A stretch of DNA of 64,000 nt from Lepidodermella squamata (GCA_047495785.1 JBLDXI010000026.1:1116001-1180000), one strand, 5' to 3'; positions 22,706-57,365 are shown, numbered from the stretch's first letter. Notes: generated from the letters alone by a model not told the origin. Translations and numbers: made by a program.

Positions 22706-24865
22706 ATGAAGCTAATACTTTCAATCCTGGCAGTGCTAATTACGATATCTAACGTACTCGGTCAAGGGAAGCAGTGTACCTCTAATGAATGGAAATGTAA
22801 TAATGGACAATGCATACTGTAATCTCGAACTGTAAAGAAATATTGGAATTAATTGAATTTTTTTGTCGAAAATTAGGAATCAGTACCGATGTGATCGGGT
22901 TCCGGTAAGAAGAATTTTGCGAATTTTTCATTCTAATCTTAATTTATCGATTTTATCAGGATGACTGCGGTAATTATTAGAGTTGCTAATTATCGCCTCT
23001 TACCGGCTTGTTTTATTCAAAGACGATGGCAGCGACGAGCTGAACTGTCCCGCTAGGACAACGACCCAGAAACCAACGACTACGACACAGGCTTCAAGAC
23101 GTGGTCAAAGCTGTTCGGCTGGAAAGTTTCAATGCGTTAGCGACGGGAAGTGCATCGAGTAAAAAAGCTTATGGAAAATCGTTTTTTTTCTAATTGAAAA
23201 CAATTCCAGCTTGAGTCAATATTGCGATGGCGAGTTCGACGTTAGTTTAGTTTTCACAGAAATATTGGCTTAATTTCTTCTTTCTCTTTTTTTCAGGACT
23301 GTGGTAATTCGAATAGCCTTTTTTAAATCTCCACGTTCGAATTTTGAACTTGAAGCGGATCGCAGTGATGAAACAAATTGCGGAACAACGACGAAATCGA
23401 CAGCAGCAGCAGCAACAACTGCAGCCAGGCAGCAGCTATCAGCAACAACTGCAGCCAGGCAGCAGCTATCAGCTGTTCAGCCGGCTTGCGGCTCTTCGGG
23501 AAGCCCACGAATTTTCGGCGGCACGGAAGCAAATCCACATCAATTTCCGTGGCTTGTTCGCTTTACTGACATCAAATTCGGGTCTAGGTCCGCTGGGTTC
23601 TGCGACGGGGCCGTTATCAGCAATCAATGGGTTTTGACTGCAGCTCATTGCGTTGTCGATAAAGACAGCGGGATGCTAGCAACCAGGTTTGAATTCTTAT
23701 ATCTATTATTCTTTCTAAGATTTTCATCCACAACACAACACAATTTTATTTATCTGGCTGGGAGAAACGTCACTAATCTTCGGAATTTTTCCAAAAGTTT
23801 GAATAGGTTAGAAGTTGAGTTAATCTAATTTGGCTCGATTCTCAGTGCCAACTTAAACCCACAGCTCATTGAAATATTCGGGATACGAGAACAAACTCTT
23901 TTCTCCTCCAAGATTCGGACCTTGATGGTTTTCAGTTTTAGGTCATAGGCCATTGAGGGATATTGAACTATATAGAAATTGACGATTCTCCGTATGGGAT
24001 TATACCTTAATTTCCCGATGGATGCCACTCCTCAGACACTCCTTTTCAATTCTCGAACCCTTTTAAGAATTCAGAGCTTTGAACACGTTTTAGGGTTGAG
24101 TTAAGCTTCAAGCGCCACAATTTGACGAAAAGTTTCAAGGAAGAAGGTGGCGTTCTGCGGAATTCTGCTGTGATCATCAAGCATGAAGAATACTTTGGCA
24201 GAGGCCCATCCGAGGAGGGCTACTACTTCGACAACGACATAGCCTTAATCAAGATGGATGCTCCTGTTCAATACGAAGCTTGGCTCAGGCCGATTTGCCT
24301 ACCAAATGAGAGCATTTGCAACGCGGCGAATCCTGATAACGTCACTGCGATAGAGCAATGCAGTGATGTAATTGCGGCTGGCTGGGGAGGCTTTTTACTC
24401 AATCGTAAGTCGAATCCACTTAAGTCTCAGCTTATGCTTCTACTCTTCTTCTCAGGGGTTGTCCAGAGTCCTGTCCTAAAGTTTGCTGAGATGAAGGCGC
24501 GATCTCGACAGGATTGTTCAAGACACTGGAAACCTTCGAAGAATCAAGTTTGCGCGGGCAATGGAATGCCCTCAACCTGCGGCGCAAGTTTATCTGTCTG
24601 GCCATTTTTGCATTTAAATTAGTTTTTTGTCGATTTCAGGGTGATTCCGGGGGTCCTATTATGTGCGTGGTTAACAAAGTCTACTATGCTGTAGGAGTGG
24701 TTTCTTTCGGACACGATAATTGCGGGCAACCTGAATTTCCATCAGTCAGTTTACTTCTTATTTGAATAGTCATCTATTTCTACTAATCTCGTTCCATTTC
24801 AGTACTTCACGAGGGTCTGCTCATACCTAACTTGGATTAGGGAAGCCATGGCTCGATACCCATGA
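22706..24865 (+). CDS. SP1: signal peptide + 2 LDLa + Thr/Ala linker + S1A serine protease (triad intact)
   Basis: Spliced LDLa modules (...[25 protein letters not shown]), activation site PR|IFGG, TAAHC, NDIAL, STCGGDSGGP; stop at 24865. Confidence 0.88.
23411..23472 (+). repeat. 30-nt coding tandem duplication ([10 protein letters not shown] x2) in the SP1 linker
   Basis: CAGCAACAACTGCAGCCAGGCAGCAGCTAT repeated twice. Confidence 0.85.
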
Positions 24866-25273
24866 TGTTAATGAAAAATATACTCGAAACAGCGGTACAG
24901 CCGATTTAGACTTTTCTATTTTGATCACTCATAATAAAATTGATGCCAATGATTGTTATGGAAATCATACTCTGTCATGTCATGCCAGTAACATTTAACC
25001 GTAAACAATAAAATCGTGGGAGTAAGACGAGCATCTCGAAATGGAGGAATCTCAGATGGCTGGCAACCTCCGGCCTTTTCAGCCTTTCCAACAGATTAAG
25101 AAGATAAGTCTTTAGGCATTAATAAAATGCTTTCATGAAATCTGATAAAATGGCTGAACACGCTTCTTGGCTAAATCTGCCGTTGTAAGTCACTAGGACG
25201 AAAGCATTTTTTGCTTTCAGTGTGTGGAGTAGTAGTTGCGTTTATTTGCAGTTGAAGCTGACTTATTGATAGG

Positions 25274-27266
25274 ATGAGACTGTTGGCTCTACTTTTGGTG
25301 ACACTTGTTGTCACCTCTTCGGTTTCCTGTCAGGAACCAGACTCTCAAGCTGGTAACGAGCCAGGTGCACAGGCTGGGAATGAACCAGGAGCTCAAGCTG
25401 GGAATGAACCAGGAGCTCAAGGCTCAAGAGTGAGTTGATTTAACTCCCTCGATCCTCCCTCTAATTCATTGCTTCAAAGCGTGCCGGTTGTGGCCCAGGA
25501 AAATTCCAGTGCGACAATTTGGAATGCATCGAGTGAGAACAAGTTTTAAACGAGCTCATCTGTTTCCCATCGTTTTGTCGATCTTTAGGAGTAGCTTCAC
25601 CTGCGATGGAATAAATAACGTAAAAAGCCAAAATTTTGTCTAATTTTTCTCAATTTATGTAAAATACAGGATTGCCGTAAGATGAATGCGATCTAAAATA
25701 CTTGGCATTACCTATACATCCACCTTAAGGGGATAACAGCGACGAGCGATATTGCAACTCTGGAACAACGACTCGGGCAACTAGCACCACTACTAGGAGA
25801 ACTTCCACAAGATGCAACTCTAACCAATTTCAATGTACCAACGGATGGCAATGCATCCCGTAAGATCAAAGAAAATCGATTCAAAGTAATTCAAAATTAT
25901 ATCTATAGGCTCTCGCAAACTTGCGACGACTACGACGTAAGTTTTATAGTAGCAACAACTCGATATAAGATTCTAATCTATGGTAATTTCAGGATTGCGG
26001 TAAGGTATCACGACCGAAAATCAGAGATTAACTGAAGGAATTTGAATTAAGATGACCTCAGTGACGAGAAATTCTGTGTTACAACGACGAAATCGACTAC
26101 AACCACATCAAGAAGACCTGTTACAACTACAACAACGCGGAGGCCAGTGGCGGTAGGAGCAGCTGCGCCTTCTGGAAACGCATCTCCGATTGGACGATCA
26201 TCGAATCCGTCATCGAGCCCGGCGCAATCTTCTTCATCTGTTGGATGTGGCACCTTAGGCAGCCCAAGAATTTTCGGTGGTACGGAAGCTGAACCGCATC
26301 AGTTCCCATGGATTGTTCGTTTCAAATTTTGGTTCGGCACCAAGTTTGGAGGAAATTGCGATGGTTCGGTTATTAACAATCAATGGGTGCTCACAGCAGG
26401 TCATTGTATTTACGACGATGAGAAAACTCAAACAGTCGCAACAAAGTAAGACTAGGTTTTATTCACAATCATGTAACATTTTCCTCAACTAGTCTCGAGC
26501 TTCAATTCAAGCGCCACAATTTGACAAAAAGTCCCGAGGAAGAAGGCGGAATAATTAGAAGGAATGCCATGATAATCAAGCATGAAGATTACATCGGGAG
26601 GGGGCCTAATGCTGATGGCGTTTACTACGACAACGATATTGCCCTAATCAAGTTGGATGCTCCCGTTCAGTACGAGGCATGGTTGAGGCCAATATGTTTG
26701 CCCGATGATATTTGCAACACAGCGAACCCCGACGATGTTGCTAGGATAGAACAGTGTAATACTGTCACGGCGGCTGGCTGGGGTGGCTTTATTTACGGGC
26801 GTGAGTTTTTGGTCTTTCTGAGGTCTGAAGAATTAGAATAACTTTGCCTTTCAGAGGCAAGCAGGACTGCCAAACAAAGTCCCGTGCTTAAGGTTGCAGA
26901 CCTTCAAGCTCGGGCGAGAGATGATTGCTCCAAAAAGTACCTTTCATCAAAAAATCAGATTTGCGCTGGGAACGGCAATCCGGCAACCTGCGGTGTAAGT
27001 AGAGAAATAAACTTAACTCATATTACAAACAATTTCTTGATATTCAATTCTGCAGGGTGACTCTGGAGGTCCGATCATGTGCATGGTGAACAAGATCCAG
27101 TACCTCGTCGGCGCTGTGTCTTACGGTCCGTCGCAATGTGGATATCCCGAATACCCATCGGTAAGATTTATTCCTAAGATCCCTTGATATTCATGTGATT
27201 TTTTAGTTTTTCACGAGAATCTGTTCATACTTGCCATGGATCAGGAAGACCATTGCTAGCAACTAA
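25274..27266 (+). CDS. SP2: signal peptide + (QAGNEPGA)3 + 2 LDLa + S1A serine protease (triad intact)
   Basis: PR|IFGG, TAGHC, NDIAL, ATCGGDSGGP; same intron positions as SP1. Confidence 0.88.
25345..25420 (+). repeat. 24-nt coding tandem repeat (QAGNEPGA x3) at the SP2 N-terminus
   Basis: CAAGCTGGGAATGAACCAGGAGCT-like unit repeated three times. Confidence 0.85.
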
Positions 27267-27561
27267 AGAGCTTTATAAAGCGGCAACTAGTAGAAAAAAT
27301 GACTAACTAATGTTTGTTTTAAAGATAATTGGAATTCGAATTGTATCTTATTCTTGACGTTTCAACGTTGAATTACTCAGCGTTTTCAATAAAAACTGTC
27401 GTATATTATTTTATGACCGCTCTAACACCGGAATCGAGTTCGTGGCAGATTCGATGCTATTTTCCATCACTTCAAACTGCAGGTCGTACTGAAAAAGCCA
27501 TGACTCCGCGAAAAAGCGCTGATTTTTTTCTGTTCAAGCATCAAAATATAAGAGATAAGAG

Positions 27562-29724
27562 TGTGGCGAAGCCACCTGTTGATGAAATGGTTATTTGAAA
27601 TTGGCGGTCGACCTTGACCGAAATACTTGGAAGTTTATTGTACCGCCAAATGGCGAATGATGATTGGTCGAATCGTTGTATTTAAACCTTCTGTAAATAT
27701 TATATTGATGTCGAAGATCTCGGAGAATAAACTAGAGATCGTTAATAACGTGTTTTATTGTTGCCAGTAGAACTACTAGCCTTGGTCTTCTTACCACACT
27801 GGTGTCAGAAGTGACCGGAAGAAGAAGGTTCTGTTTCGAACTGCAGTGTGTTTAGCGCCTTGAGGGCGTTGGGGGCTCGGGTTGTACCGACGCCCGGCGT
27901 AATATGGTAACAGTTGCCTTGGTTGACATCCTGGCGCAATGGCTCGATTCAGCAGTTGAGGGTTTTGGCCAATGGAATCTGTGCGGAAGGCAAGCGATCG
28001 AAGACAACGAAATCGGCGAAATGGCTGCAACGACAGCGACAGTATGCTGTGAGCCGCGGCCTGGCATGGCGATGGTACGAACGCAACTGGGTGAGAAGAA
28101 TGTTCCGATGTTTCCGGTGAAGCTACGGCGAATGAGGAAGGTGAGGCTATCAGCTGTTCGCAAGATTGACTGGCCTGCTGAACCGATCAGACCGAAGGCG
28201 CGACGGATGGCAATGAAGCCGAGCCAAGTGAAGAACCCGCCAGCAAGGAAGCCGTTGCTATTTTTCGTCGTCAGTCGACCTCGTCGGAAAAAGAAACGCC
28301 GTAATGGTTCGTCGTGTGTCAAGTGCGGGAGCAGTATGGTATCGAAACGGTTCGAAACGATCGCAAGGTTCACGACTGTGTCTAGCGGCTGATTGGGCCG
28401 ATCAACCCGTTGAAGTCAAGCGGCAACGTCCTATGTCAGGTAATACATAAAGACTTGCTCTCTGTCCGAATGTGTGCCACCGGCCAAGTGTGATTGAGTA
28501 AATTGTTAAGCTTGAAACGTTCATTGAAGATTTTCTAACAAGGGAAGGTTTTTTTTTTCGATGAATGGCTGAGAAATTGATTGGCGTAAAAAAAAAAAAT
28601 ACGCACCATGATTTTTTATAGACTGGGACGCGTGTGTGAGCGTCGATATTTGTAATGGATGAATGAATGGATAGATCGTCACATCAAGTGAAGTGTTGGT
28701 TCTTGAATTATAAATTGTAATTGTTTATTTCGTTCTGCAAATGTTCTTCAAAATGGCTGTGACCTTGATTGTATCAATATGATGTGTAATTAGCAAATAG
28801 CTCTCATTACCATTGTAAATAGTCGAGCGAATCGTTCTTTCTCTTGTATACCTATTGTTGCTAAATGAATGAAACAACTCTGCTCTGCTCTATCCCTTTT
28901 CCTTGCGAGATTGTAATAAATGATATAACACTGATCTACCTTATCTATTTTCTCTCTCCAACCCTCTACCTTGCCCTTTGCAAAGTGACGTCTTGGCTCT
29001 CTCTAGTCTGTTATTCTTGCCTCGATATAATATTTTCCTTTGTGAGATAATGTACCTACGAAAGTAATATTCTCAAATCGATGGTCTAGTAATCGTTGGA
29101 AGTCATACGAAGTAGCGTTAACATTACGTTAAACAATTTTTTTTATTTTTATTTTGCCCGCTCGTTGATATTTACGATTCAGAATGTCGGTTGGGCGATG
29201 AGCCAGGCGGCCCGGTCCGGCTTCGATGGATGTCGCCGAGCCGAGGAAGCTTGGGGGTCGTCTCTTCTCGACCAGCGGGAACACGAGAAGTTTTTGAAGC
29301 CCTAGTGGCGATTATTACCAATGAATAAACGTTTGCCTTTCAGATCATCGAGATCGCTGTTCTGAGTTGTAGATAATCTTATCCTAATCTTGTCTTGAAC
29401 TTCTGTCTTGGTCTTGTCTCCTTCTCTCGCTGGTACCTTATACCTTATACCTTTTATCTGTTTCGTGAAACCGAAAGGTGGGAGGAGTGTGGCGAAGCCA
29501 CCTGTTGATGAAATGGTTATTTGAAATTGGCGGTCGACCTTGACCGAAATACTTGGAAGTTTATTGTACCGCCAAATGGCGAATGATGATTGGTCGAATC
29601 GTTGTATTTAAACCTTCTGTAAATATTATATTGATGTCGAAGATCTCGGAGAATAAACTAGAGATCGTTAATAACGTGTTTTATTGTTGCCAGTAGAACT
29701 ACTAGCCTTGGTCTTCTCGCCACA
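27562..29724 (+). mobile_element. Non-autonomous LTR retroelement (2163 bp, Ty3/gypsy-type cis signals)
   Basis: 237-bp LTRs at 27562-27798 and 29488-29724 (TG...CA, 235/237 identical). 5-bp TSD AAGAG at 27557-27561 and 29725-29729. PBS TGGTGTCAGAAGTG (tRNA-Leu complement) at 27800. Polypurine tract GAAAGGTGGGAGGAG before the 3' LTR. No gag/pol. Confidence 0.93.
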
Positions 29725-30024
29725 AAGAGACTTAGCGAATTAACGGGCGTTGGTTGATAAGGCGAACGCGATAGAAATAGGCGCAGGGGTACCACAGATT
29801 TCACGAGGGTTGAGCTTATCCAACATTATTCAGTGAATACAGAGGGCTCCTGGAGCAGAGGATTTAAATTAACGTCACGGTTTTATCTTAAATCTGCCTA
29901 CCTAATACCCCGCTATTCTCAATGCGCCATTGCCTGACCTTGGGCCAATGTGTAAAAATATGATGAAATGATGTAAACGTGTCGCTGCTTGGGTTACTTA
30001 TGCATCAACCCAAGCATTAGAAAG

Positions 30025-32211
30025 ATGGGATTATCATCGAATCTGAGTTTCCTGTATTTTTCATATATCTTCATCCTTGCTATTGATCCAACAAATGAAC
30101 AAGCTGATGGAGTAAGCAATCTTCCTCATCCAAAATCAAAGTTATAGAATATTGCCCGATAAGCAGGCTGGAGAATATTGTCTTCATCAGTTCAAATGCA
30201 GCGACATGACATGTATTCCGTATGAATGATGACTATAATTGTGATTGAAAGGTGACTTCTTTTCTCCTTTCCCACCAGGCTAGACCTTAAATGCGATGGC
30301 ATACATGTAAATTGAATCATATAAATTACCTGTAAACTAACCAAGCTTTCCCTATAGGATTGCAGTAAGAATTGATGCCATAAACCTGTTCACGTATAAC
30401 CCTAAGTTTATCCGAGGAAGAAGATGAGAGTGATGAATGGAACTGCGATGAAACGACCCCGCAGGCAGCAGCCAGAAGACAATGTCAGTCGAATGAATTT
30501 GCATGCAACAATGGAGAGTGTATCAAGTATAAGTTCACAAATCTTGCAACCGGCCTTGAATAACCTAAAATGGCTTTCTTCAACAGCAAGTTTTTCAAAT
30601 GCGATGGCTTAGAAGTAATAAAACTATTTTACCAGTAAATTCAGTCTAGATAATTTGTTAACTTTACAGGACTGCAGTAAGTGGTAACCCTAATAATCGA
30701 ATAATCGTCGAACCATACTATCGCAGTCGATCGAAGCGATGAGCTTAACTGCCCATCCACCTCAACAACTAGAAAGCCCACGCAAGCGACGCGGAGGCCG
30801 ACTACGACAAAATGCCCCATCAACATGTTCCAATGTATTAGCGATGGAGTTTGCATCGAGTAAGTCTTTGCAATCAACAGTATATGGGAGGTCTTAATAA
30901 TTTGCATATTAAAGTCGTAGCCAGTATTGCGACGGATACTTCGACGTAAGCTCAAAAAGATACCTACCATCATGTGCGCGATTACTTATTTTCAAATGAA
31001 CAGGACTGTGGTAAGACCTACTATTGATAGCTCTCGATTTTTGAACATTCCTGAGTCGAAAAGCGGACGCTAGCGACGAAAGAAACTGCACATCCACTAC
31101 GACGCCTAAATCAGTAGCCACACAAAGAAGGCAATTATCTCTCACCGCTCTCGCCGGGACATGTGGAACGATTGCCTCTTCGCGCATTTTCGGCGGAACA
31201 GAGGCCGAACCACATCAATTTCCGTGGATGGTTCGATTTTGGGTGAAATTTGGGGCAAAACCAAGTCGCGGCGTTTGTGATGGAGCTCTCATCAACAGTC
31301 AGTGGGTTTTGACGGCAGCGCATTGCGTCTACGAGGAGAAGCTGCAAATCGTCGCTTCTGAGTATACCTCAAACCTAACAGCCACGACTTTTTAAGCAAT
31401 TTTTGTATGTAGCGTCGAACTCCATTTCAAGCGGCACAACATTACTAAAACCCTCCAAGATGAACGGGGATTGAGTAGAGCAGCTCAGGTGGTCGTCAAG
31501 CATGAAAACTACACAGGCCAAACACCTGATCTGAATGACGACTCTGGCATATATTACGCAAATGACATCGCATTAATCAAGCTCAGCGAGCCCGTGCAAT
31601 TCGAGCCTTGGCTGAAGCCGATCTGTTTGCCAGACGAAAACATCTGCGACTCGGAAAATGCAGATGACGTCGCAACGGTAGAGCGTTGTAGCACAGTAAC
31701 TGTAGCCGGCTGGGGTGGATTTGCGTATGGCCGTGAGTTAGCGAGTTTTAAAATCAAGAAGTGTTTGCCAATAACAAAATTTCCCAGAGAAAAATCAAAG
31801 TCAGGTTTTGAGAATAGCTGAAATGAAGGTTCGATCCAGAGTCGATTGTGAGAATCACTGGGGCATTTCGCAAAATCAAGTTTGTGCAGGCTATGGAAAC
31901 CCATCGACCTGTAGCGTGAGCAACTTGAGCAAATTCGCGCTATTATTTTTTGCATTCTCCCTAATTAATCCTAAAGATATTCTTTGTTTAGGGAGATTCA
32001 GGCGGTCCAATGATGTGCGCTGTGGACAAGATATACTACGCAGTTGGTGCCATCTCTTTCGGGGCACCTAACTGCGGCGAATATGGATTTCCCACGGTAC
32101 TCATATTTGTGATTATTCGATTACTCTAAAATTTTCCATTGCTACCAGTACTTCACCCGGATTTGTTCTTATCTTCCTTGGATTCGACTAACAATGGATC
32201 GCAATTCGTGA
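30025..32211 (+). CDS. SP3: signal peptide + 3 LDLa + S1A serine protease (triad intact)
   Basis: SR|IFGG, TAAHC, NDIAL, STCSGDSGGP; micro-exons at 30358, 30670 and 31004. Confidence 0.85.
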
Positions 32212-32569
32212 GGCTGGAACCCGTTGAAAAACTTCCCCCTATAAACTACTATCTAACGATGATATAAGACGTTATCTTGCAGAATTTGGCAAAATAAATA
32301 GATTGTTTAGTAACTGTCCTTCGAGTATGGCGACTTGTTTCTAGTGTTTTCTTTTTGCCCTTTGGAGCTTCAGTATGTAGATTCCTATCTAGTACGTAGA
32401 ACGAACCCTCGTGTGCACGAATTGCTTGATGACGTGAGTTTATGCCCATTCATAAAATGGTGATACTTAGCTTCAACACACGACTCTGGCACGCTGCTAA
32501 GTTAACAATATAAAATAGACTGAAATTTTACTTCTTCCTATTACACAGTCTTTTGAAAACTTAGCGACG

Positions 32570-34794
32570 ATGGTACAATTATCAGTGACAATTCTAATCA
32601 TCGCATTTATTGGTTTCCCCACAATGAATGCCGATGACTATGTAGACAGTATAACTACTACAACCCTAAGCCCCGATACAGTAACATTCAACAGAACTAG
32701 ATGGACAAGAAGCCCTTCTTCCACTCGGCCAATAAGGAGGCGTAACGCTACGACTTTGGATCGAGATTCGACAACAACTAGGGCTGCGAGAATTCGAGCC
32801 CTTGTAGCAGCCCAAGCTGGGGTTGATCCCGTTGCACAAGCTGGAGGGGTAAAATCTTGCCGCTATCCATTGCAGAAACTAAAAGGGCTTTAATTAGGAT
32901 GGAGATTACTGTCCTGGGCAATTTCAATGCAACAATTACGCATGTGTTCCGTATGAGTAACACATTTCTTACTAAACAATATTCATAATAGTTACCATAG
33001 GAAGGAATACCAATGCGATGGCTACTCTGACTGCCGTAAGAAGAAATGATTGTTCCGCAATTTTCTATAATCTCTACCTTAAAATAATAGGCGACAACAG
33101 TGATGAATGGAACTGTGCAGTTAAAACGAATCCCACAACTAAAGCAACATTCAAAAGGAAGCAGTGCGCACCCAGTGAATTTACATGCTTGGATGGAGGG
33201 TGTGTACGGTTAGTTGTTCAGTCCCTATACCTAGAAACATTATAAAAGTATCCTGTATCATTACTCAGGATGGAATACAAATGCGATTCTTACGATGTAA
33301 GTTGTATTTAAATTCAAGGAATGGTTTTTTAACTGCTCTTTGTTCCTATTAGGACTGTGGTAAGAATTCTGAGACTGAATGCCATTTCGATCTATTGTAT
33401 ACTCATATAACAGACGATTCAAGCGACGAAATGAACTGCAGATCTGCTCCTAAATTACAGAGCTGTGCGTCAAACGAGTTCAGCTGCAACAGTGGCGAAT
33501 GCATTCCGTAAGATTTTCAGCAGTCAACTCTCATGATAACTTGAATGATTAACATTTCAGAATTGATTACAAATGCGATACGTATGATGTAGGTAATCAA
33601 TCTATCCCTGAGGAATAACACTACATTTTATTATTATTTAGGACTGTGGTATGATGTTCCTTAATAGCAATGGAAATTTAACTACCTGTGTCTGAATAGC
33701 GGACTCAAGTGATGAAATGAATTGCAAAACAACTACGACTACGACAACGAAGCGGCCACCGACCACTCAAGCATCCTTTGGAGCTTGCGGCTTCGTGCAG
33801 TTCCAACGTGTGATAGGAGGCACAGAGGCAGACCCACATCAATTTCCATGGATGGTGCGAATGTTCGTTAAATTTGGCACGAAGCCAGGAAGATCGACAT
33901 GCGACGGCGCCCTCATTAACAATCAATGGGTTTTAACAGCGTCTCATTGCATTTATGAATTTGAGACTGGGTTGCAGGCTACTAGGTTTGTTCAACACCT
34001 GAAAATCATTCAGGAAAAATTATCTCAACATTTCTAGCGTGGAGTTGCATTTGAGGCGACATGATATGAGCTTAGATATTAGCGCCGACGGTGGTGTATT
34101 AAGAACGGCCCAAGTTGTGATTAAACACGAGAATTACGTCGGCAAAACTGCGACATCATCTTACGACAACGACATTGCGTTAATCAAGCTCAATTCTCCG
34201 GTTCAATTCGACACATGGCTGCGGCCAGTTTGCTTGCCGAATGAATCGATTTGCGATTCGGTCAATTCTGACAATACGGTTACGGTGGAAAAATGCGTTG
34301 GGAATGTTACCGTTGCAGGGTGGGGTGGTTTTCAGTACAACAGTAAGTTATAAGATTTTCAAAGACCTCACTCAATCTCCCTGGTTTCTTCATCCTCAGA
34401 CAAGGCAGCTAGTACCGTTTTACGAGTTGCTGATCTGCCGGTCCGATCGAGGGCTGATTGCTCTGACACTTGGCAATTGACAAAGAACCAAGTCTGCGCA
34501 GGCTATGGAAACCCTGGAACATGTGGGGTGAGAACCTCAAATGCATTTTTCATCTCTTCAGGAGTTTGTTAACAGGGTGATTCCGGAGGTCCAGTGTTTT
34601 GTTTAATCAACAAGCAATACATCACCGTTGGGGCAGTTTCCTTTGGATCGCCGATTTGCGGTGATTCAGATCGGCCTTCGGTAACTTAGAAGTTAAACTA
34701 TCGTCACTGATGCCTAAAAATCGACAACTTTCAGGTTTTCACGCGGGTCTGTTCCTACCTGTCATGGATTCGTCAGAAAATGGCGCAAAATTAA
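32570..34794 (+). CDS. SP4: signal peptide + Thr/Arg-rich N-terminus + 3 LDLa + S1A serine protease (triad intact)
   Basis: QR|VIGG, TASHC, NDIAL, GTCGGDSGGP; TATA-like TATAAAA at ~32509. Confidence 0.87.
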
Positions 34795-40586: not shown

Positions 40587-43530
40587 ATGAATCAGATCCG
40601 TTTCGCAATTTTAGCCTGCCTTTTCTTCGCAAGGCCAGCATCGTCGGCGGTAATCCACGATTCATAATATGCTTGCCATTTTCGTCTCTACTGGAATTTT
40701 TAAGGGTGATTGTCAAGTTGGAGAATTTTCTTGCAGAACGACAGGAATATGCTTTCCGGGAGGTTATGTGTACGTCAATCAGTAATAACTCAAGATTTGT
40801 AATTGCTTTCATGATATATCTATTCAGATGTGATGGGGACCGTGATTGCAGTAGGTTCCGCATACTTTGAAATGATTTGGTTTGCACTTATATTTAAAAT
40901 GGCAGCAGACGGAAGTGACGAAGAAAACTGTTCAAGTAGCCGAACTCAAACGACACCAAACACTGTGTGCTGCCTTTTACGTTAAATCCGCCATGTCTAA
41001 TTTCGTAATTCTAGACCCGGCAGACTCTGCAGCCGATCATCACTGCCCCCACTACGGCAGCTACACCAATCAGAGGAGTAAATTGGAAGAGTTGCTTGGC
41101 TTTGTGATTTTTACAATTTCAAATCAACACAGGGAGCTTGCTCATCCACCGAGTTCACTTGCAAATCAAACGGCAAATGCATTTTATCCTTCTATGTGTT
41201 GGTTTATTTATGTGCAAAGCATTTTAGATGAAAGCTTTAACCATTTCTTAGATGCGATGGCGGTCGTCCAGACTGTGGTGAGTTGGATTATGAAGTTGCC
41301 AATATCAGGAAATAGATATTTCGGAATTCAGAGGACGGAAGTGACGAGGCTGACTGCCGGACCACTACATCCCGTTCGACAACAACTGCCACTACCAGTA
41401 CAACTGATCAGGTATATTGCCTATAGAGAAACCCTGAAATATATTAAACAGGTTTTATCGTATTTATTGCAGGTATGAATGAATTCAGGAAGTTTACAAT
41501 AACTATAAAAGAATATTTAGAGTGGCTGTACTTCGGATCAGTTCGCATGTAGATCTAATGGCAAATGCATCCCCGCAAAATATGCGACGATGCGGTGAGG
41601 GAAAGAAGAAAAATGATTTTTCAAAAAACAACCACTTGTGTTTTTATATCGCAATAGTATCGTTTCTCTTCTTCATAAGTCGCAATTACGGAATATATGA
41701 GATTTAGCATTGGAAAATTGGTGAATTAGCTTAGAAGCATAGAATTTGCCGCTCGGAAATGTTCGAAAATACCAGAAACTCTACGTTTAATTCTCGGATT
41801 TTCATCAAAATATATGGCAAGGCAGCAATTATGGCTCTATTTCTGCTATCGGAATGATTAAATCGTGGGTTTTTATTAGGAGCATATTAGCCAGAGATCA
41901 ATTAGATAACAATTTCTGACAATAACATTGAAATAACCCCAATTAGCTACAAAATTGCATTTGAATAATAATAAAAAGCGTTGTTTCTTTAAGGATGCAA
42001 TTTTTCCCTTTTTCTTCTCACCGCATAGTCATTTTGAAGGCTACGTCAAAATCCTTTCAAACCCATAAACTTGGCGATTAGATCTTTCAAAATTATGTTT
42101 AGCCATTGAAACACTGATATTTCAGCTATTTACAATGCTGCAAACTTTTTTGAACACACTGTATTCTTACAGAGAAGGTGCACCGCTAACCATTTCGCGT
42201 GCAGAAAGATTTTTCAATGCATTCCAGTTAGTTATTAGTAAGTATGAAGCGCAAGTATAGCTATAAATGCTCAATCAAAAACTTCTGTGAGCTAGGCGTG
42301 ACAGTGAGCTTGATTGCAGTAAGGAAACCTGCAAAAGGTTATAAAATAGTTAGTTTGGTCTGCTTAAGGTGCGATGTTAATGACGAAACAAAAAGCACAT
42401 GTATTTCCAAAATATTTCCTATAATACTCCAAATCATATAAACATCTCCACGGTTTCTCAAGGACCGACGACAGGAGGTGAGATGGTACAATGAAAAGGA
42501 ACATTTTTATATGAAATGGCATTCAGCCGTCGTGCGGTGATGACGAATTCAGCTGCAAGTCGAATGGATTCTGCATTCCCAGTGATTTTGTGTGAGTCAC
42601 GTTCATCCTTCGCCTACGAGCACTATAATATTCTTTTATCATGATGCTTCAGGTGTGATGACGAAGCCGATTGTGGTAAGAGAAGTCGCGCCTAATTTTT
42701 GGAGGTGATTATTTTAAATTTTCCCTTAAAACTCAGTCGATGGTAGCGACGAAGCCGAATGCGACTCCACAAGCAGGGAGGTAATTTTTCTAGATACACT
42801 TCTACTTCTGAGAAAAAGCTTCATTCCATTTGAGGTAAATAACCCGGATATTTCGTGCGGGAGTCAATTCCGTTGCTCAAGTGGCCAATGCGTACCTGCC
42901 ACATTCGTGTAAGACTGTATCCATAATGTGATCATGATATTTATAACAAGATGAGCGCTTATGCCTTCCCATAGATGCGACGGGGATAGAGATTGTTGTA
43001 AGTTACAAGAATTACTATTAGCCTTTGGAGATAGATGATATATCATATGCTTTTGCAGCTGACGGAAGCGATGAAGCTGGCTGTAAGACAACAACGAGAG
43101 TGGTAAGGAATATCAGCTTTTGTTGAAATAGACTCAAAGTCCTATTATCTTTTTCAGGTGAGCAGGACATCGACCTCGCGAACCGGTTTCTGTAATGGAT
43201 TCACGTGTCGACTATCTGGAGAGTGCATTCTTTCTAACAGTGTGTAAGTCGCCATCTCTCGTTTTAGTTTTACCACGATGAAACTGTCAACCCTATTAAC
43301 TTTGTTTCAGATGCGATGGCAGAGACAATTGCTGTAAGTTGTGCTAACTACTCATGGGTTAATTGTAGATTACGCCACAATTTGCTAGTTGACGGTAGCG
43401 ATGAAGAGCACTGCTCCGCAACAACTACTCAAGTAAAATTCGATTGCTGCATTACGGATTGTTGCATAACTTGAATTTTCAGAGCCCTGCGACGACTTTT
43501 GTATGAGACGACCGATGGAGATAATCGAGG
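40587..43530 (+). pseudogene. Degenerate LDLa-only gene (copy A), tandem duplicate of 45129-48091
   Basis: Colinear with copy B, but the end of module 3 and all of module 4 are replaced by a TE-like insert (~41600-42161). Module 5 has a spliced TA|G stop, Cys->Arg, a 2-nt insertion and a lost donor. The 3' end is approximate. Confidence 0.65.
41600..42161. mobile_element. Tc1/mariner-like relic (only the right terminus is recognisable); a related end lies at ~44520-44725
   Basis: TTTTTGAACACACTG|TA at 42161 and TTTTTAGACACACTG|TA at 44725 with similar upstream sequence; absent from the paralogous copy B. Confidence 0.45.
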
Positions 43531-45128
43531 TTAAAGTCAGCATAATTAATCATCGTATATGCACTTGTCGACCTGAAAGTTGTTATTCATTAGCCGCCGT
43601 GTCTTGAATCAGTGCGCGTTTTGACAAATTAACATGCTTATCTATGAGGTTTGAACATTAAAGATGATTTCGTAATTATTTGTAAACTACAGGCGTGAGA
43701 GTATTTTGGGTTTAGATTAAAGCAACAAACATTAACTGAAACTCTGAATCAATTCCTATGGACTGTTGTTTCTGATCGAATAAGGCCTCTAAACAGGCCG
43801 CCGTAAAATGAGAATGAGCAAAATATTGCAGTAGAAGGTTGACGACCCATTCATGCTAAAAAGGGTGCTACGAAGAGAGTTTTCTTTGGTCATTAAATGC
43901 CATCCCTGCTACGATAAAACAAATGAACTTGCTACGGAACAAATACAGCGTCAAACTAGAAACAAATTGTGTAATACTAATACATAAATTGCTGCTCATT
44001 CTGGCGAACTTTTCCGTTGCTAAACATGAATTTGATAGCTCTAAGCGCCAAGTTTCTGCGGTTGGAAGGACGTTCTGAAATGTCTCTACTGAAATGAGGT
44101 AGATCCGGAATCAGACGTGGCTTGCAGAATGCACATTATCAGGCCCGCCCACGTTACGGCTCTGCGCGCGCTCCTATTGGCCAGCTCATTTTGAACTGTA
44201 ATCATGCATGAACTTGCAAAATGACGAAGTTGTGAAATAAACAAAGAAATGCGCAATTTTGTTAGCCAATAAAGTTATTCTCAAGGAGTTCAATTTTATT
44301 TCTGGCTAATGTTACCAAACTTTCATCGTCCCTAAACAGCGCAAGAAATGCTGCCATTGCCTCTATTTTGACAGTAATTCGAGAACTTCACGAGATTCCG
44401 AGGTAGAGCGTTCCTGGCATTTCCCAACCTTTCAGAGAGGCAAAACTAAATCTTCCTTTAGTTTAATTATTAAATTTTCAAATTTAGTACTCATGTTTTT
44501 ACCGTGATTGCGACTTTGGAAGACGGGAAACAATGTCATTGGCGACTTCAGAAACCTTGTTGTTGTTTTTTGAAATAACTACTTGTCTATTCTTTCTCTG
44601 AATTCTTATAACCACAAATCTCGGCGAATGCAGCTTTCAAAATCATGTTTCAAAACCACGGAAAGATTCGCCAAAATGAGCGAATGGAAGCAATATATTA
44701 TTTTCAAACGTTTTTAGACACACTGTAGAAAGCTGTTTCCAAGAGTTCATTTCGCCGGTCTTGAAATCCTTGAATTCCTGCAAATCCAGTCTGCTAAGAA
44801 TTGCTACGCTGGCCGCAACGACGTAAATTTTTCATTCCACATTAAAATTTGTTCAATAAATGCGGCTTCAAAAATAAAATTGAAGATATTCTCTAAAAAG
44901 GATGTTGATTCATTCTTAAAGCCTTCGTGACTCTATAGTAAGGTTTTAAACTCATGTACTGCTGTAAATTTCCACTGTAGTTTCGTCTGCCACGCCAACA
45001 TGCCTTTTGTGTCGCTGCTCTTCCTATTGTTTCGGAAAAAAAAGATTAAAAAAAGACGTGGTAATATGTTGCCCCTAGTTCCGAAAGTCATCATATTGTG
45101 TATTATTTTGGCTTTCAAACTTCAAGAC

Positions 45129-48091
45129 ATGAATCAGATCCGTTTCGCGATTTTAGGCTGCCTTTTATTTGCTAGGCTAGCATCGGCAGCGGTAATCCAA
45201 GATTCAAATTTGTATTACTATTTTCGTCACTACTGGAAATTTTTAGGGTACCTGTCAAGATGGAGAATTTTCTTGCAGAACAACAGGAATATGCTTTCCG
45301 GGAGGCTATGTGTACGTCTAATAGTAAAATTTTATTGCTTTCATGGAATTCTTTCATATTCAGGTGTGATGGGGACCGAGATTGCAGTAGGTTCTGCAAG
45401 CTTTCAGCATATTTGATGAGAAATTTGATATAATGACAGCTGACGGAAGTGATGAAGAAAACTGTTCAAGTAGCCGAACTCAAACGACATCAACCCCCGT
45501 GTGTTACCTTTAATTTTAAATCCGCCATTTCGAATTTCGTAATTCTAGATTCGGCAGCCGACCTCTACTACCACCACTACATCAACCAGAGGAGTAACTT
45601 GAAAACATTCTCTTGGCTTTGCGATTTTTATAATTTCAAATCAATAGCAGGTAGCCTGCGCATCCACCGAGTTCACTTGCAGGTCAAGCGGCAAATGCAT
45701 TTTATCCCGCTATGTGTTGGTTTATTTATGAGCAAACCATTTTAGATGAAAGCTTACCCCATTTCTTAGATGCGATGGTGGTCGTCCAGACTGTGGTGAG
45801 TTGAATTCTGAAGTTGCTAATACCAGGAAATTGTTATTCGGGGAATTTAGAGGACGGAAGTGATGAAGCGAACTGCCTGACCACTACACCAAGGGCAACA
45901 TCCCGCTCGACAACAACTACCACTACCAGTACTACTACTCGGGTATATTGCCCAGAGAAACTCTCGAAGATATCAAAAATACATTGTATCATATTTATTG
46001 CAGGTATGAATCCGGCTTGAGGATTTTAGCAGTCACTGTAACAGGATATTTATTAGAGTGGCTGTACTCTGGATCAGTTCGCGTGTAGATCTAATGGCAA
46101 ATGCATCCCCGCAAAATATAGGTATGTAAGGCTATTTTTGGTGAAAAACCCAAAATCCTTATTTTCTCGGCAGATGTGACGGAGGACGACCAGATTGTGG
46201 TAAGAAAATAGGCTGCATGCCTGATCTCTACAGATTGATACGGCACTAACTCCTAGATGATGGAAGTGACGAAGCAAGTTGCGGAACATCCACTGCCAGC
46301 ACAGTAATAATTTTTACGCGATTAGCGAAAAACATTACCTGTCCTTTTCAGACTAAACCTGCGGTATGAACGGCGTTTAAACTAGAGAATGGGATAATTT
46401 ACGCTGCTGTAATAGCTTAGCTGCTCGCCCGATCAATTCGCATGCAGAACGACTGGCCAGTGTATACCAGCTCGTTATCAGTAAGTTGTGAGGTCAGTCC
46501 TAATGATTTTGATACGACGTTATTTGAATGAAATAGATGCGATGGAGGCTGGCCTGATTGCCGTAAGACATGAAACTGATATTCCGAAATGGCAACGTAA
46601 ACTTCATTAAATTCAGTCGACGGAAGTGACGAAGCGAACTGTTGGCCATTTCCCTTCTCCACCTCGACTGTAAGCCTTTCATGAGACTTGAAAATACGGA
46701 ATCAGATGTTAATGTTTTAGCCTGGATCGAGATGGGTGATCTCGGTTAGTACGCGTAATTTGCTCCACAAGTGCTGCATGACTTATATTATATTATTCCA
46801 GAGAAGGTGCACCGCTAACCAGTTCGCGTGCACAAGGATTTTTCAATGCATTCCAGCTGATTATTTGTAAGCATCAAGCACAAGTATAGATATCAATGCT
46901 CAATCAAAAACTGTGAACTAGGTGTGACGGTGGGCTTGATTGCAGTAAGCAAAACTTGCGAAAGCTTAAGTAAAATGCGCATGATTATACTGGGGTCTGC
47001 TTAAGGTGATGGTAGTGACGAAACAAATTGCACATCAATTATTTCCGTAATATTTCATGTATAATCCTTCAAATCATATAAACATTCCTCGGTTTCTCAA
47101 GGACCGAAGACAAGAGGTGAGGTGGTAACATGAAAACGAACATTTTTTTCATGAAATAGCATTCAGCCGTCGTGCGGTGATGGCCAATTCAGCTGCAAGT
47201 CGAGTGGATTCTGCATTTCCAGTGAATATGTGTGAGTCACGTTCATCCTTTGCTTATAAGCGCCGTATAATAATTTTCCGTGATGCTTCAGGTGTGATTA
47301 TGATGCCGATTGTCGTAAGAAAAGTCGCGCCTAATTTTTGGAGGCGATAATTAAAACTTTTCCTTAAAACTCAGTCGATGGTAGCGACGAAGCCGAATGC
47401 GACTCCACAAGCAGGGAGGTAAATTTTGTAGATACACTTCTACTTCTGAGAAAAAGCTTCTTTACATTTGAGGTAAATAACCCGGATATTACGTGCGGGA
47501 GTCAATTCCGTTGCTCAAGTGGCCAATGCGTACCTGCTACATTCGTGTAAGACTGTATTCATAACGTGATCATGATATTTATAACAAGATGAGCGCTTAT
47601 ACCTTCCCATAGATGCGACGGGGATAGAGATTGTTGTAAGTTACAAGAATTACCATTAGCCTTTGGAGAACAATGATATAATATGCGCTTTTGCAGATGA
47701 TGGGAGCGACGAAGCTGGCTGTAAGACAACAACGAGAGTGGTAAGGAATATGAGCTTTTGTTGAAATAGACTCAAAGTCCTATTATCTTTTTCAGGTGAG
47801 CAGGACATCGACCTCGCGAACCGGTTTCTGTAATGGATTCACGTGTCGACTATCTGGAGAGTGCATTCTTTCTAACAGTGTGTAAGTCGCCATCTCCCGT
47901 TTTAGTTTTACCACGATAAAACTGTTAACCCTATTAAACCTGTCAATCTTCCTATAGATGTGACGGGGATAGAGATTGTTGTAAGTTACAAGAATTACCA
48001 TTAGCCTTTGGAGAAGAATGATATAATATACGTTTTTGCAGATGATGGAAGCGATGAAGCTGGCTGTACGAGAACTACGAAAATCGGATAG
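45129..48091 (+). CDS. Secreted LDLa-only protein (copy B): signal peptide + 8 LDLa repeats, no protease or TM domain
   Basis: MNQIRFAILGCLLFARLASA followed by eight C-x-F-x-C...C..|CD....DC|.DGSDE..C modules that splice in frame; ends AGCTRTTKIG-stop at 48091. Confidence 0.8.
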
Positions 48092-49387
48092 CTTTTCATC
48101 GTGGACTCGGGTATCGAATCACAATCGCAGTGGTAGAAAAATACCGAACGTCCAAAACCTTATTAATTATCAATATATAACAATGATGCATTAAACAGTC
48201 TTTAATCAATATCTTATCAAATCTAAAATATTTAATCAGTTATCAATTATTATCTTATCTTCATTCTTTTTCTGATTTTGGGGCTGCGTTTTAGAACAGG
48301 TCTGCCGAGTAAACTATGGCGATTTTCGAAAAATTCGCAAATTTTGAATTCAAAACTCCAGCCTCCTTTCAAAGTTTTACAAAATTTCATGACAAATTTA
48401 GAATATTGGTGAATGATGGAGGATGATGGTGAATATGAGATCGAAGTTATCCACATCCGAAGCGAGTCGGACTTCGCGTGGGATTCGGAATTAAATTTTG
48501 CGTGGCGAATGACCTTGACTATCAGGTTGACCAGGCCTGTTTCAGAAATGCTGAAGAATGAGAATTTGCGATCAGAAATATCCTACGAAATCAAACTGAA
48601 CTTGATCACATTTCATCAAACCATGCTGCAGATTTTAACCTTCATAATTAGGCAAGCATCAAGTACGACTGGAATGATGCGAATAATATTTTCCCTTTGC
48701 TTGTGAGCATAAGCATGAATCAGCTAGCGCAGCAAAAAAACGCGAAAATAGGAGTTATTAGCACTCGAGCCCGGTTACGTTTTTTTACTGGCCCGCGTAG
48801 AAGTTGTTTTTGGGCTTTTCAAATATCAATATAATGCCAATTGCGATTGGCGATATTTTGCAAATTCCTGGAAAATCAGTAAAAAATCTTCGAAGTTTGC
48901 TCTAGGTATCGACAAGTGGACCGTGATGCGGGGTACCTGGACCATTAAAGAACTGCTTGATTATCATCAACTTGATTAATTGATCACGAAATTTATTTAT
49001 ATTTTCCAAGAGTTTACTTCGCCGGTCTTTAAATCAATTACGTGGCCGAAAATGACATATACAGATGATATACAGCGTGAGAGCTGAGCCTTCAGGCCGC
49101 TGCCTCAACTCAAGAAAACTTTACGAACTTACAAGTTTTAATAATTCAAAAAGTGTTTGTCCGGCATGAATTCCTATAACGCAACGGGGTTAAAGTGCCT
49201 GCGAACCTCTTGGTTTGGATCTACTTGGTTGGCATTGTTTACATGGGCACATATACACACGAATTTTACGTGTCGTGAATGAGGTTTGCCTAGTTTTCGA
49301 TGCCGAAACACATCATTCGTTATGACACATGAGGCCGAGTCGATTAAGTGCACACCGCTAATTGCATTCCACTGAATGCGCACACAA

Positions 49388-49420
49388 TATAAAGCCATGA
49401 GCTCCCCTCAAGTGAGTGTT
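49388..49420 (+). promoter_or_regulatory. Core promoter (TATA + initiator-like) of SP8; the initiator block is shared with SP9 and SP10
   Basis: TATAAA followed ~20 nt later by CTCAAGTGAGTGTTGTA, which recurs at ~53612 and ~57601 together with an upstream CGTGCACAC..TAATTGCATTCC-like block. Confidence 0.45.
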
Positions 49421-49451
49421 GTAGTTTTCAAAATTTCATCTTAGAAGAAAG

Positions 49452-52035
49452 ATGCGCACGTACACTGGGCTCCTCCTGGTCGTCCTCTTGGCTCCTGCCG
49501 TTGTAAGCTTGTCTGAAACTAGGTGCGCCTTCTCTTTAAAAGAGTTTTCGGTTAGTTTGGGCAAGACGACAGTGATTTTGGCGATTGGAACGGTGGTGAT
49601 ACCGGAAGTCCAAGCAGCAATAACGGCGGTGGATCAAGGGGTCGATGCTCTGGGTTCACCTGTGGTGATGGGGCCTGCATAGAAGCGTCTTGGAAGTATG
49701 ACTATTGCCATTCGCAGACCAATTTAATACATATATATTTTTCCTCGCCTAGGTGCGATGGGGACGCAGACTGCAGTAAGAATAATCAGTCTTTCTCAAT
49801 ATTCAAACTTCTATTACGAATTTCGCTAGACGACGGAAGTGATGAGCGCAATTGCAACGGTCCTCTTCCGCCGGGCACCTTCGGACGAGAAGTACGCATC
49901 ATCACAAAAAGCTCCTAATTCCAACTGTATTTTGCTGTTTTTGTTTCAATTTCCAGTCTACATGCACGGGTTTCTCATGCAACAACGGGCGCTGTATCTC
50001 CGCTGACTATGTGTGAGTTCAATTTGTAATATGGTTTTCAAAGCTAAAAAGGAATGTTATAGGTGCGACAATGATGATGACTGCGGTTTGTCTTAGCAAT
50101 TTGCAACTCGAATTCGTAATAGAAGCATTATTCTTACAGATGACGGTAGCGACGAAGCCAACTGTGCAGCTGCCACTACTCCTAAACAGGCACAATGCGG
50201 ACGGGGCGAATTCAAGTGCAACAATGGCAGGTGTATAACAGGCTCCTATCTGTAAGAATATCAGAATGCTAAGATGTGGAATTAATTTGCCCTTATTTTT
50301 TAGTTGTGACGGTGACAATGACTGCGGTGAGTATCCTTAACGATATCAGTGATATCCGACCCATGTTCATCTTGGTTTAGGTGATCGAAGCGATGAAAGA
50401 AACTGCAGAGCTACAACTACAACACCAGTAAGTAGAACCTTACAAATCGGTGATCTGCAGAAATTAACTGAACTTTCCAAGGCTGGATGTGACGGGTTCA
50501 CCTGCAACAATGGAAACTGCGTTAGTTCGTCATATGTGTAAGTTGGGAAATCGGATTCATTCATGGCAGCCGTCAAAGATTCATTTTCTAATTTTTAGCT
50601 GCGATGGGGATGACGATTGCCGCAAGTTTCAATTATTTCTACCGGAATGTTATTTATTAATCGATATTCTAAATGAGCAGGCGATGGAAGCGATGAGAGA
50701 AACTGCCCCGGTTCAAACGGGAGAGTGAGTTATATAATTTATTGAACTGGCTGCAGCGGTATCACATTCAATACTTTGTTCCCAAGGCCAACAGTTGCGA
50801 CGGCTTTACATGCATGAATGGCAATTGCATTCAATCGAGCTATGTGTAGGTTTCCAATCAAAATTACAGTTTTTCCTTAATCCAATGTGATCACCTTAGT
50901 TGTGATGGCGACGACGATTGTGGTAAATCATCATGAATGAATCTTTATATGCCATAAAGTTCTGGCCCATAAATGCCAGGTGACAGAAGTGACGAAATCA
51001 TCTGCCGAGGAGCGGTAATTATAGCCTTTCTTGCCGAAATCGTATAGGCTAATAATTATCTTATAGGCTCCACAGACAACACGAACGACAACTCGACCAA
51101 CAACTAGACCGACAACTCGGACGACGACGCCACCAAGAGCTGCCCCAGCCCCCGCTCGAGCCTCGGCTCCGTCTCCTCCTCAGGCACCTCTACCCCCTGC
51201 TGGAAGTTGCGGCTTGACTAGTTCGAGCACCATGGCAGCAGTTGGTGCCCATCCTTGGATGGTTCGAATGGAAATGAAGTTCACAACAACCCCAGCTGGA
51301 CGTATCGTAATCTGCGGAGGGGCTTTGATTTCCGATCAATGGATCCTTACTGCTGCTCATTGCGTTACCGACGAAAAGGGTGGGAAAATTACTGATGTTG
51401 TGGTCCGTCTTGGCAGGAATGATCTCTCCCAGAAAAGCGAGCGAGGAGCTTATGACCTGGCCGCAACTCAGGTTTTCAAACATCCTAGCTACGATGCCAA
51501 CAACAAATGGTTTATGGATTTTGCGCTGGTGAAACTTCGGTCGAAAGCAGCCTTCTCCAGAACAATCCAACCAATTTGCTTGCCTGAGGGTTTGTGCAAT
51601 GCCACGATTCAGGAAACAGCAGCGTTTGCTGATAGTTGCAGGGAAGCTGTCGTTGCTGGCTGGGGAGTTTCAGACGGTAAACATCTTTGGATCTTGAATA
51701 TTGATTTTTGAATACTGTTTGTATCCTTCTTAGATGATCCCAGCCCCGACCAGCTGCTGGAAGTAGCAGTTCGCATCAATCCTCGTCAGCAATGTGATGA
51801 CAAGTATGGCCGACTATCGACTGCCCAAATATGCGCTGGAGACGGAACACGAGGCACCTGTCGAGGCGACAACGGTAGCCCGTTGATGTGCAAGCAGAGT
51901 TCGACTGGCCGTACTCATATCATTGGTGTTGTGTCTTGGGGCTACGTGGAGTGCGGAAAAAATGGTTATCCCTCTGTATTCGCTCGCGTCTGTACTGCCT
52001 TGCCATGGCTTAAGGAAATTATGGCTAATAATTGA
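49452..52035 (+). CDS. SP8: signal peptide + 5 LDLa + serine protease homologue (activation site deleted, Ser195->Asn)
   Basis: Reading frame intact; SST-MAAVG lacks GRIFGGT; TAAHC and MDFAL retained; GDNGSP. Confidence 0.82.
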
Positions 52036-56343: not shown

Positions 56344-56443
56344 TCTTCTCGTATTACGTTTTAAAGATTGCGTCCACTAATAACTACTATATGAATTCAG
56401 ATTTTTAATTCCGATTCCATTCTAAGGCCAAAGGTAATATTAA

Positions 56444-56771
56444 CACTAGGAAAAAAACTAGGTTTATTAGCTGATTTTTAGCTCGGAGCCAAAACTGAGT
56501 CGTCAATTTCCATGCAAAAACACAGCTGATTAGAGGGACATAGGAGGGTTTATTAGCCTATCCCAGCCATGACCCGAGCTAATTAGCTTGTCTTTCATTG
56601 TGAGACAAAATAAAGTAGTTGCAAGACAATGAAAATCTAGCTTATTAGCTAGCAAAGGCTAATAAACCCTCCTATGTCCCTCTAATCAGCTGTGTTTTTG
56701 CATGGAAATTGACGACTCAGTTTTGGCTCCGAGCTAAAAATCAGCTAATAAACCTAGTTTTTTTCCTAGTG
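56444..56771. mobile_element. CACTA/EnSpm-type MITE, 328 bp, with perfect 116-bp terminal inverted repeats
   Basis: CACTAGG...CCTAGTG termini; 56444-56559 is the exact reverse complement of 56656-56771; flanked by AA on both sides (2-bp TSD). Confidence 0.9.
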
Positions 56772-57039
56772 AAATCGTCCCGAATAATGTTTGAATATAA
56801 TAAATGCTATAAGGAAAATTGATCGATAATTTATTTTAACTCAGCCGTAGATCTCTCTATGAACTCAGCTCTACTATTAAACATCTTAATATTTAATATT
56901 CATGTTACCCGAGACCATACAATTCGAGACCATACCCAAGACCATTCTCTCGACTCGCCAATTCCAAAACACCGCGAGTTGCATCAATGTTCAGCTCGAC
57001 CAATGGCTGAAAGGAGCGGCGAAGTCCGCGAGACAGGCC

Positions 57040-57365
57040 AGATTTGCTCAGTTTTATTCTCAGACTTAAGAATAGGCGTAACAATGCTAGTTTTCCAGTA
57101 GTCGGGATACTTGCGACAGTCAAGGATGCTGTTGTACAGGTTGACATGGGCGAGTCGTGCTGCTGAATTGTTGAGAGCGTCACGGAGTAGGTTTTCCGGT
57201 ATGTCGTCGGAGCCAGTCGTCTTCTTGTTTGATAATTTCTACAGGTTACGCAGTATATCCTCCTCAGTTAACTTGCGGAAGGAAAATACCTCGGTGTATT
57301 GGCTTGAACGGGAGAAGTTCGGCTTTGGTAGCGAGTTGGCAATACTGGCACCGATGGAGACGAAA
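57040..57365 (-). mobile_element. LINE ORF2 fragment (region just upstream of the RT domain), with an in-frame stop
   Basis: FVSIG...FSFRKLTEEDILRNL*KLSNKKTTGSDDIPENLL...LYNSILDCRKYPDYWKTSIVTPILK, the typical L2/CR1-group RT domain-0 motif. Confidence 0.8.

Follow-up and report, generated by a model that had tools for sequence, protein, structure and literature searches.

Seven-nucleotide exons within LDLa modules of four Lepidodermella squamata protease genes are probably constitutive

Four serine protease genes (SP1-SP4) in a 64,000-nt stretch of Lepidodermella squamata DNA (GCA_047495785.1 JBLDXI010000026.1:1116001-1180000; the window) contain nine micro-exons, each of which encodes the Asp-Cys5 of its LDLa module. 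We think that these micro-exons are constitutive, a by-product of the high intron density. They probably arose where a phase-0 intron precedes an older phase-1 intron by 7 nt, were duplicated, and are spliced one ~55-nt intron at a time. We put the probability of this reading at roughly 0.84. We read the micro-exons as constitutive because both of those in SP4 are included in RNA, because their flanks and splice sites are normal, and because a 35-nt exon of SP4, in which the same residues are fused to the upstream exon, is used as well.

We assembled spliced models of the four genes by script and ran database searches exon by exon. The genes are:

22706..24865, + strand: SP1, 11 exons, 420 aa; signal peptide, 2 LDLa modules, Thr/Ala-rich linker, S1 protease (RIFGG, intact His/Asp/Ser, Ser189); spliced model
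25274..27266, + strand: SP2, 12 exons, 472 aa; signal, short repeat, 2 LDLa modules, Thr/Ser linker, S1 protease (Ala189); Trypsin in exon 26052-26445
30025..32211, + strand: SP3, 15 exons, 467 aa; signal, 3 LDLa modules, linker, S1 protease (Ser189); spliced model
32570..34794, + strand: SP4, 14 exons, 510 aa; signal, Thr/Arg-rich stretch, 3 LDLa modules, linker, S1 protease (Gly189); transcribed

By their sequences, the products are predicted to be secreted zymogens with LDLa modules, a linker, and an S1 protease domain. With Pfam, the exon pieces score above the cut-off for Trypsin and below it for Ldl_recept_a, the pieces being fragments. In the spliced models, the six-cysteine pattern with a D-C-x3-S-D-E tail (LDLa, PF00057) is present in all 10 modules. 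All four proteins also have the features of S1A zymogens: an activation site of the form R-(I/V)-x-G-G and the His/Asp/Ser catalytic triad. Residue 189 is serine, alanine, serine, and glycine in SP1, SP2, SP3, and SP4, so given what is known of the S1 family, they are presumably not trypsin-specific. A homologue search with the protease exon of SP4 found distant S1 proteases only (at most 50% identity among the best 150 matches).

The micro-exons are:

22960..22969, + strand: 10-nt micro-exon, SP1 module 1; Asp-Asp-Cys5 plus 1 nt; flanking introns of 55 nt (phase 0) and 53 nt (phase 1)
23297..23303, + strand: 7-nt micro-exon, SP1 module 2; sequence and spliced model
25670..25676, + strand: 7-nt micro-exon, SP2 module 1; sequence and spliced model
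25993..25999, + strand: 7-nt micro-exon, SP2 module 2; sequence and spliced model
30358..30364, + strand: 7-nt micro-exon, SP3 module 1; sequence and spliced model
30670..30676, + strand: 7-nt micro-exon, SP3 module 2; sequence and spliced model
31004..31010, + strand: 7-nt micro-exon, SP3 module 3; sequence and spliced model
33353..33359, + strand: 7-nt micro-exon, SP4 module 2; included in RNA
33642..33648, + strand: 7-nt micro-exon, SP4 module 3; included in RNA

The initial annotation had placed nine micro-exons at exactly these positions, had each carry Cys5 and the preceding Asp, and had argued that the LDLa frame depends on them. All of this holds. Every segment has (C/T)AG upstream and GTA downstream (9/9), translation of the spliced models gives the expected Asp and Cys5, and SP1-SP4 are open with the micro-exons and broken without any one of them. 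(We take the Asp before Cys5 to be a putative Ca2+ ligand, equivalent to Asp200 of LDLR LA5.) Eight of the micro-exons are 7 nt long and one is 10 nt, so with their YAG and GTA flanks they fall within the usual limit for micro-exons (at most 27 nt with canonical sites). The segments are not chance motifs: between 22701 and 34800, the + strand has 8 copies of AG-GAYTGYN-GT and the - strand none, versus a mean of 0.033 and a maximum of 1 in 1000 shuffles. A longer pattern that also includes the next intron and the SDE tail (expected count 0.00) finds the same eight and one false match at 57975. The latter is not a micro-exon, but encodes Glu-Asp-Cys within a continuous exon.

Two sequencing runs cover the stretch: X1 (2015), which is RNA-like, and X2 (2024). 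We compared their contigs across SP3 and SP4 (29800-35000; 5201 nt). The X2 contigs include SP3 but have no joints, and X2 behaves like a DNA run. SP4 is covered by X1 from 32542 on, with all 13 of the predicted introns removed. In the SP4 contig from X1 (1042 nt, word depth 95), both 7-nt exons are included letter for letter. At these two exons, the alignment has jumps of 115 and 109 nt, broken by five letters; these five letters, plus a shared G on each side, give exactly the junctions of the model with the micro-exon included, unlike the skipped form. X1 also contains the joints of the 35-nt exon (32950/33001 and 33035/33091). The initial annotation had looked to transcripts that lack GAYTGYN or use other splice sites as evidence against the micro-exons, and there are none among the SP4 contigs of X1. 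A caveat is that the absence of the skipped SP4 form comes from one run, and that contigs drop rare forms. SP3 has no contig in X1, and the RNA support spans two of the nine micro-exons, both in SP4.

We also examined the introns and splice sites. The 107 modelled introns have a median length of 55 nt (96% are within 46-67 nt), and those that flank the micro-exons are 50-58 nt. The splice sites of the micro-exons score no lower than the others: 7.18 vs. 6.65 for donors and 6.37 vs. 5.56 for acceptors (neither is significant). Nor are their acceptors enriched for UGC in the nearest 15 nt (0 of 9 vs. 20 of 98 elsewhere). Introns of ~55 nt are most likely recognised singly, across the intron, in which case a micro-exon need not be seen as a unit and would be included by default. 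In C. elegans, shortening a flanking intron releases micro-exons from their regulator (PMC8378409). Short introns by themselves still leave room for regulation, as the eMIC-regulated exons of Drosophila are also flanked by short ones (PMC8797185).

Comparing the LDLa modules suggests how the layout arose. The window contains 41 of them, all internally split, with four intron layouts. Ten are in SP1-SP4, and the comparison uses these further features:

33001..33035, + strand: 35-nt exon (28+7), SP4 module 1; Asp-Cys5 joined to the upstream exon, phase-0 intron absent; a natural control, confirmed by RNA
40711..62997, + strand: comparison set of 31 LDLa modules in other genes; phase-1 intron at Cys5+4 nt, no intron before Asp-Cys5

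A phase-1 intron 4 nt from the start of Cys5 is found in all 41 modules. All 10 modules of SP1-SP4 are also interrupted by a phase-2 intron, 8 nt past the start of Cys3, and in 9 of the 10 a phase-0 intron precedes Asp-Cys5. The earlier description of each module as split by three introns (phases 2, 0, and 1) is thus right about the phases and about nine modules, but SP4 module 1 has two introns. Among the comparison modules, 29 of 31 are cut by a phase-2 intron 1 nt upstream of Cys4, which puts Cys4 to Cys5 on an exon of 23 or 26 nt. (Of the other two, one lacks the first intron and one is only partly resolved.) None of the 47 small LDLa exons has a length that is a multiple of three, so very small exons that shift the frame are the norm in these modules. 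In SP1-SP4, the end of one module shares an exon with the start of the next. Modules of the shufflable 1-1 class occupy a single exon between phase-1 introns (PMC8001218), whereas all of those in the window are cut internally, so they do not belong to this class.

The initial annotation had also stated that LDLa modules are typically single phase-1 exons. This fails here, with 41 of 41 modules split, and in one unrelated invertebrate LRP-type contig that we found with a relaxed pattern (L001; EGF domains and an LDLa fragment). In four successive modules of L001, introns lie at -2, +1, +6, and +4 nt from Cys5, so intra-LDLa introns at this place are not peculiar to this genome. The micro-exon pattern itself had 0 matches in metagenome contigs, which is weak evidence as few of those contigs are from animals. 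A literature search for intron positions in LDLa proteases or for a micro-exon LDLa layout found no paper.

The modules of SP1-SP4 are about 50% identical to one another in protein and the cores of their introns cannot be aligned (mean z of about 0.2), so the intron layout is old. We propose that an ancestral module of this family also carried a phase-0 intron immediately upstream of the Asp-Cys5 codons; this would have isolated GAYTGYN as an exon. Duplication of modules and genes would then have copied the layout nine times. Selection on the protein (the Cys5 disulfide and the putative Ca2+-binding Asp) probably fixes both the sequence and the length of the micro-exon. As for SP4 module 1, precise loss of the phase-0 intron seems the more likely history. 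In a tree of the modules (only 36 columns), SP4 module 1 lies among the micro-exon modules, next to module 1 of SP3 (96/85), which weakly favours loss.

Could the micro-exons be regulated instead? The initial annotation had proposed a splicing on/off switch. In such a switch, skipping in some cells or stages would give a premature stop, followed by NMD or a protease-less fragment, so that the protease is off. Its premise that skipping shifts the frame of everything downstream is correct. Without any one micro-exon, the frame closes at 53-220 aa, short of an intact protease domain, and the stop lies 593-1031 nt before the last junction (AS-NMD takes more than 50 nt). Skipping would require introns of 110-118 nt, and since introns of 322 and 407 nt also occur, a 110-nt intron is physically possible. 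Stops at about 590-1030 nt before the last junction are what a switch would need, and it could also account for the lack of an SP3 contig in the RNA-like run and for the persistence of the layout across modules with ~50% identity and unalignable introns. But skipping would shift the frame for 40 of the 44 internal exons of SP1-SP4 and nearly all of them would yield a comparable stop, so an NMD-type stop says little in favour of a switch, and conserved intron positions are normal without regulation. The SP4 contigs include both micro-exons and show no skipped form, and there is neither a weak 3' site nor a UGC signature. Two or three redundant switches per gene would gain little, and one module has no micro-exon. 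Also, regulated micro-exons mostly have lengths that are multiples of three (PMC8378409). Overall, the switch is unsupported and we consider it quite unlikely. Retention was considered as well: read-through of the flanking introns is rejected because 17 of 18 retention forms end early.

A different kind of control would leave the micro-exon always included, with its flanking introns removed slowly and in order because of a weak AAG acceptor, so that detained introns limit the rate of protease output. The acceptor after the micro-exon is indeed AAG in 6 of 9 cases, versus 5 of 98 elsewhere, although these copies are not independent. All six are in SP1-SP3 (6 of the 7 micro-exons there), where the downstream acceptors score 3.2 vs. 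5.6. In the spliced models, these AAG acceptors are dictated by the spacing of the modules. They could guard against skipping, slow splicing, or be merely inherited, and slow splicing is not the same as regulation. Detained introns do flank micro-exons in plants (PMC8831610), and two X1 contigs of low depth (3 and 5 vs. 95) carry intron sequence around the micro-exon at 33353. But the joints in these contigs are fold-backs, and their source could be a library artefact, pre-mRNA, or DNA. Moreover, SP4, which is the sole gene with RNA, has CAG or TAG acceptors. We view detained introns as very unlikely. It is more improbable still that SP1-SP3 are silent or otherwise spliced, with micro-exons that are not used as modelled. 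The lack of an X1 contig for SP3 would fit, but the frames are open, the triads are intact, and the splice sites are intact at all 7 positions even though the introns cannot be aligned. In-frame bypasses of the micro-exons exist only via GAG acceptors, which are used by 0 of the 107 modelled introns, and they delete Cys5. More generally, we think it unlikely that the 7-nt exon and AAG acceptor of SP1-SP3 form a regulated element, whether by conditional skipping to NMD or as a detained-intron checkpoint. If they did, a family of secreted proteases would be controlled by a splicing switch that is repeated and embedded in a domain, of a kind not described for LDLa proteases. We prefer constitutive splicing, in which case the micro-exons of SP1-SP3 should be included as those of SP4 are, and regulation in other tissues or stages is not expected.

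The significance is mainly practical. For the L. squamata genome (122 Mb in 157 contigs, 43% GC, with one adult transcriptome), the annotation comes from BRAKER with short reads (PMC11660948). The expectation that automated annotation misses such exons is in line with the general literature, as micro-exons are commonly missed (PMC8831610). The LDLa proteases described here need micro-exon-aware gene models. The array is also a natural series, with 41 paralogous modules, four intron layouts, and one fused micro-exon. It could be used to address the minimum size of an exon between ~55-nt introns, and the effect of a weak downstream acceptor on skipping.

How do these genes compare to known systems? 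As proteins, SP1-SP4 resemble ModSP and HP14 of insects, which are also secreted zymogens with LDLa repeats before an S1 protease domain. Complement factor I, enteropeptidase, and matriptase are other modular serine proteases that contain LDLa. Unlike these modular proteases, SP1-SP4 have no CCP/sushi, CUB, or SRCR domain and no membrane anchor; they have a Thr-rich linker and Ser/Ala/Ser/Gly at residue 189.

As genes, SP1-SP4 recall the micro-exon genes (MEGs) of schistosomes, which encode secreted proteins with very small exons (PMC4015677), and gastrotrichs are sister to flatworms (PMC11660948). However, MEG exons are symmetrical, account for as much as 75% of the coding sequence, and diversify the protein by being skipped (PMC4015677), whereas the micro-exons of SP1-SP4 are asymmetrical, each is under 2% of the coding sequence, and they lie inside a folded domain. 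With 0 of 47 small LDLa exons in multiples of three and 2-3 micro-exons per gene, we reject membership in the MEG type. Neural micro-exons that depend on SRRM4/eMIC or PRP-40 are similarly short (at most 27 nt), and those of Drosophila have short flanks too (PMC8797185, PMC8378409). But these are alternatively spliced, for the most part keep the frame, and have UGC motifs and weak 3' sites (PMC8797185, PMC8378409), and we found none of these traits in SP1-SP4. The lengths of 7 and 10 nt, the acceptor scores (6.37 vs. 5.56), and the lack of UGC (0/9) speak against the eMIC/SRRM4 type.

The micro-exons of plants are closer. Conserved exons of 1-15 nt lie within plant protein domains (such as the 9-nt exons of AP2 and invertase genes), encode core residues, were spread by gene duplication, and are often unannotated (PMC8831610). 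They also merge into a longer exon when a flanking intron is lost (PMC8831610), as seems to have happened in SP4 module 1. In contrast to the LDLa exons, which are 7 nt and are from this genome only, the plant exons have been followed through the land plants, and those named have lengths that are multiples of three (PMC8831610). As probably constitutive exons, the micro-exons work like that of human MPC1, a constitutive 4-nt exon (PMC9929638) that is likewise very short, essential for the frame, and included in mRNA. The MPC1 exon depends on an exon-defining region in the flanking introns (PMC9929638), whereas the flanks in SP1-SP4 are 50-58 nt, as is usual for the introns here, and module duplication has given nine copies of the exon. 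A new mechanism would be indicated only if regulated skipping exists. The micro-exon array is a real and partly RNA-confirmed instance of an already known phenomenon.

We examined the splice sites of SP1–SP4, four neighbouring genes that encode a signal peptide, LDLa modules, and an S1 protease. The acceptor directly after the micro-exon (a tiny exon carrying the Asp-Cys5 of an LDLa module) is AAG in six of the seven cases in SP1–SP3 (at 23022, 23355, 25729, 26051, 30420, and 31063). AAG acceptors are rare at other introns (5/98). In SP4, the micro-exon at 33353 is followed by a 54-nt intron (33360–33413) with no in-frame stop. If this intron were retained, the computed product would gain 18 residues within LDLa module 2 and would keep the protease (528 amino acids). 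GC-AG introns with GCAAGT donors are found at 50622, 54945, 58875, and 24584: three lie at the Cys5+4 position (a phase-1 intron 4 nt into Cys5) of paralogous modules, and one is in SP1. SP1 also has an intron of 407 nt (23687–24093), for which the counterparts in SP2–SP4 are 47–52 nt; no sequence resembling it is present elsewhere in the window.

A second SP4 haplotype in X2, a 2024 run that behaves as DNA, shows 24 differences from 32654–33041 and 6 gaps over 388 nt. A second, allele-like SP4 transcript piece, spanning modules 1–2, is present in X1 (an RNA-like run from 2015). Both also lack the phase-0 intron (just before the Asp-Cys5 codons) that is missing from SP4 module 1.

The window and the comparison contig contain these other features:

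9685–12054: intronless ORF of 789 amino acids with an ANF_receptor domain and a hydrophobic C-terminal half
27562–29724: 2.16-kb element flanked by LTRs, lying between SP2 and SP3
36552–39933: two genes with long exons and sushi-like repeats ahead of a protease domain
40589–43500 and 45129–48090: LDLa-only gene present twice in tandem
51190–52030: protease-like domain without RIFGG and with GDNGSP as its Ser motif
56444–56771: fold-back element (124-nt arms, 98% complementary, 80 nt apart)
63078–63860: protease-like domain with TAAEC as its His motif
L001 (- strand): 1,654-nt metagenome contig, a fragment of an invertebrate LRP-type gene

With their altered catalytic motifs, the domains at 51190–52030 and 63078–63860 are likely inactive homologues. 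The 789-residue ORF resembles a class C GPCR.

The element between SP2 and SP3 has two terminal repeats of 237 nt with TG...CA ends and 2 differences between them, and a 5-bp target duplication (AAGAG). The left repeat is followed by a primer-site-like sequence, and a purine run precedes the right repeat. Because it contains no long ORF, it is probably a young non-autonomous LTR retrotransposon. The fold-back element is MITE-like.

Relative to the second copy of the LDLa-only gene, the first has modules near 41527 and 42179 that appear incomplete or stop-interrupted. In L001, the introns are 75–92 nt and lie at four differing offsets around Cys5 in successive LDLa modules.
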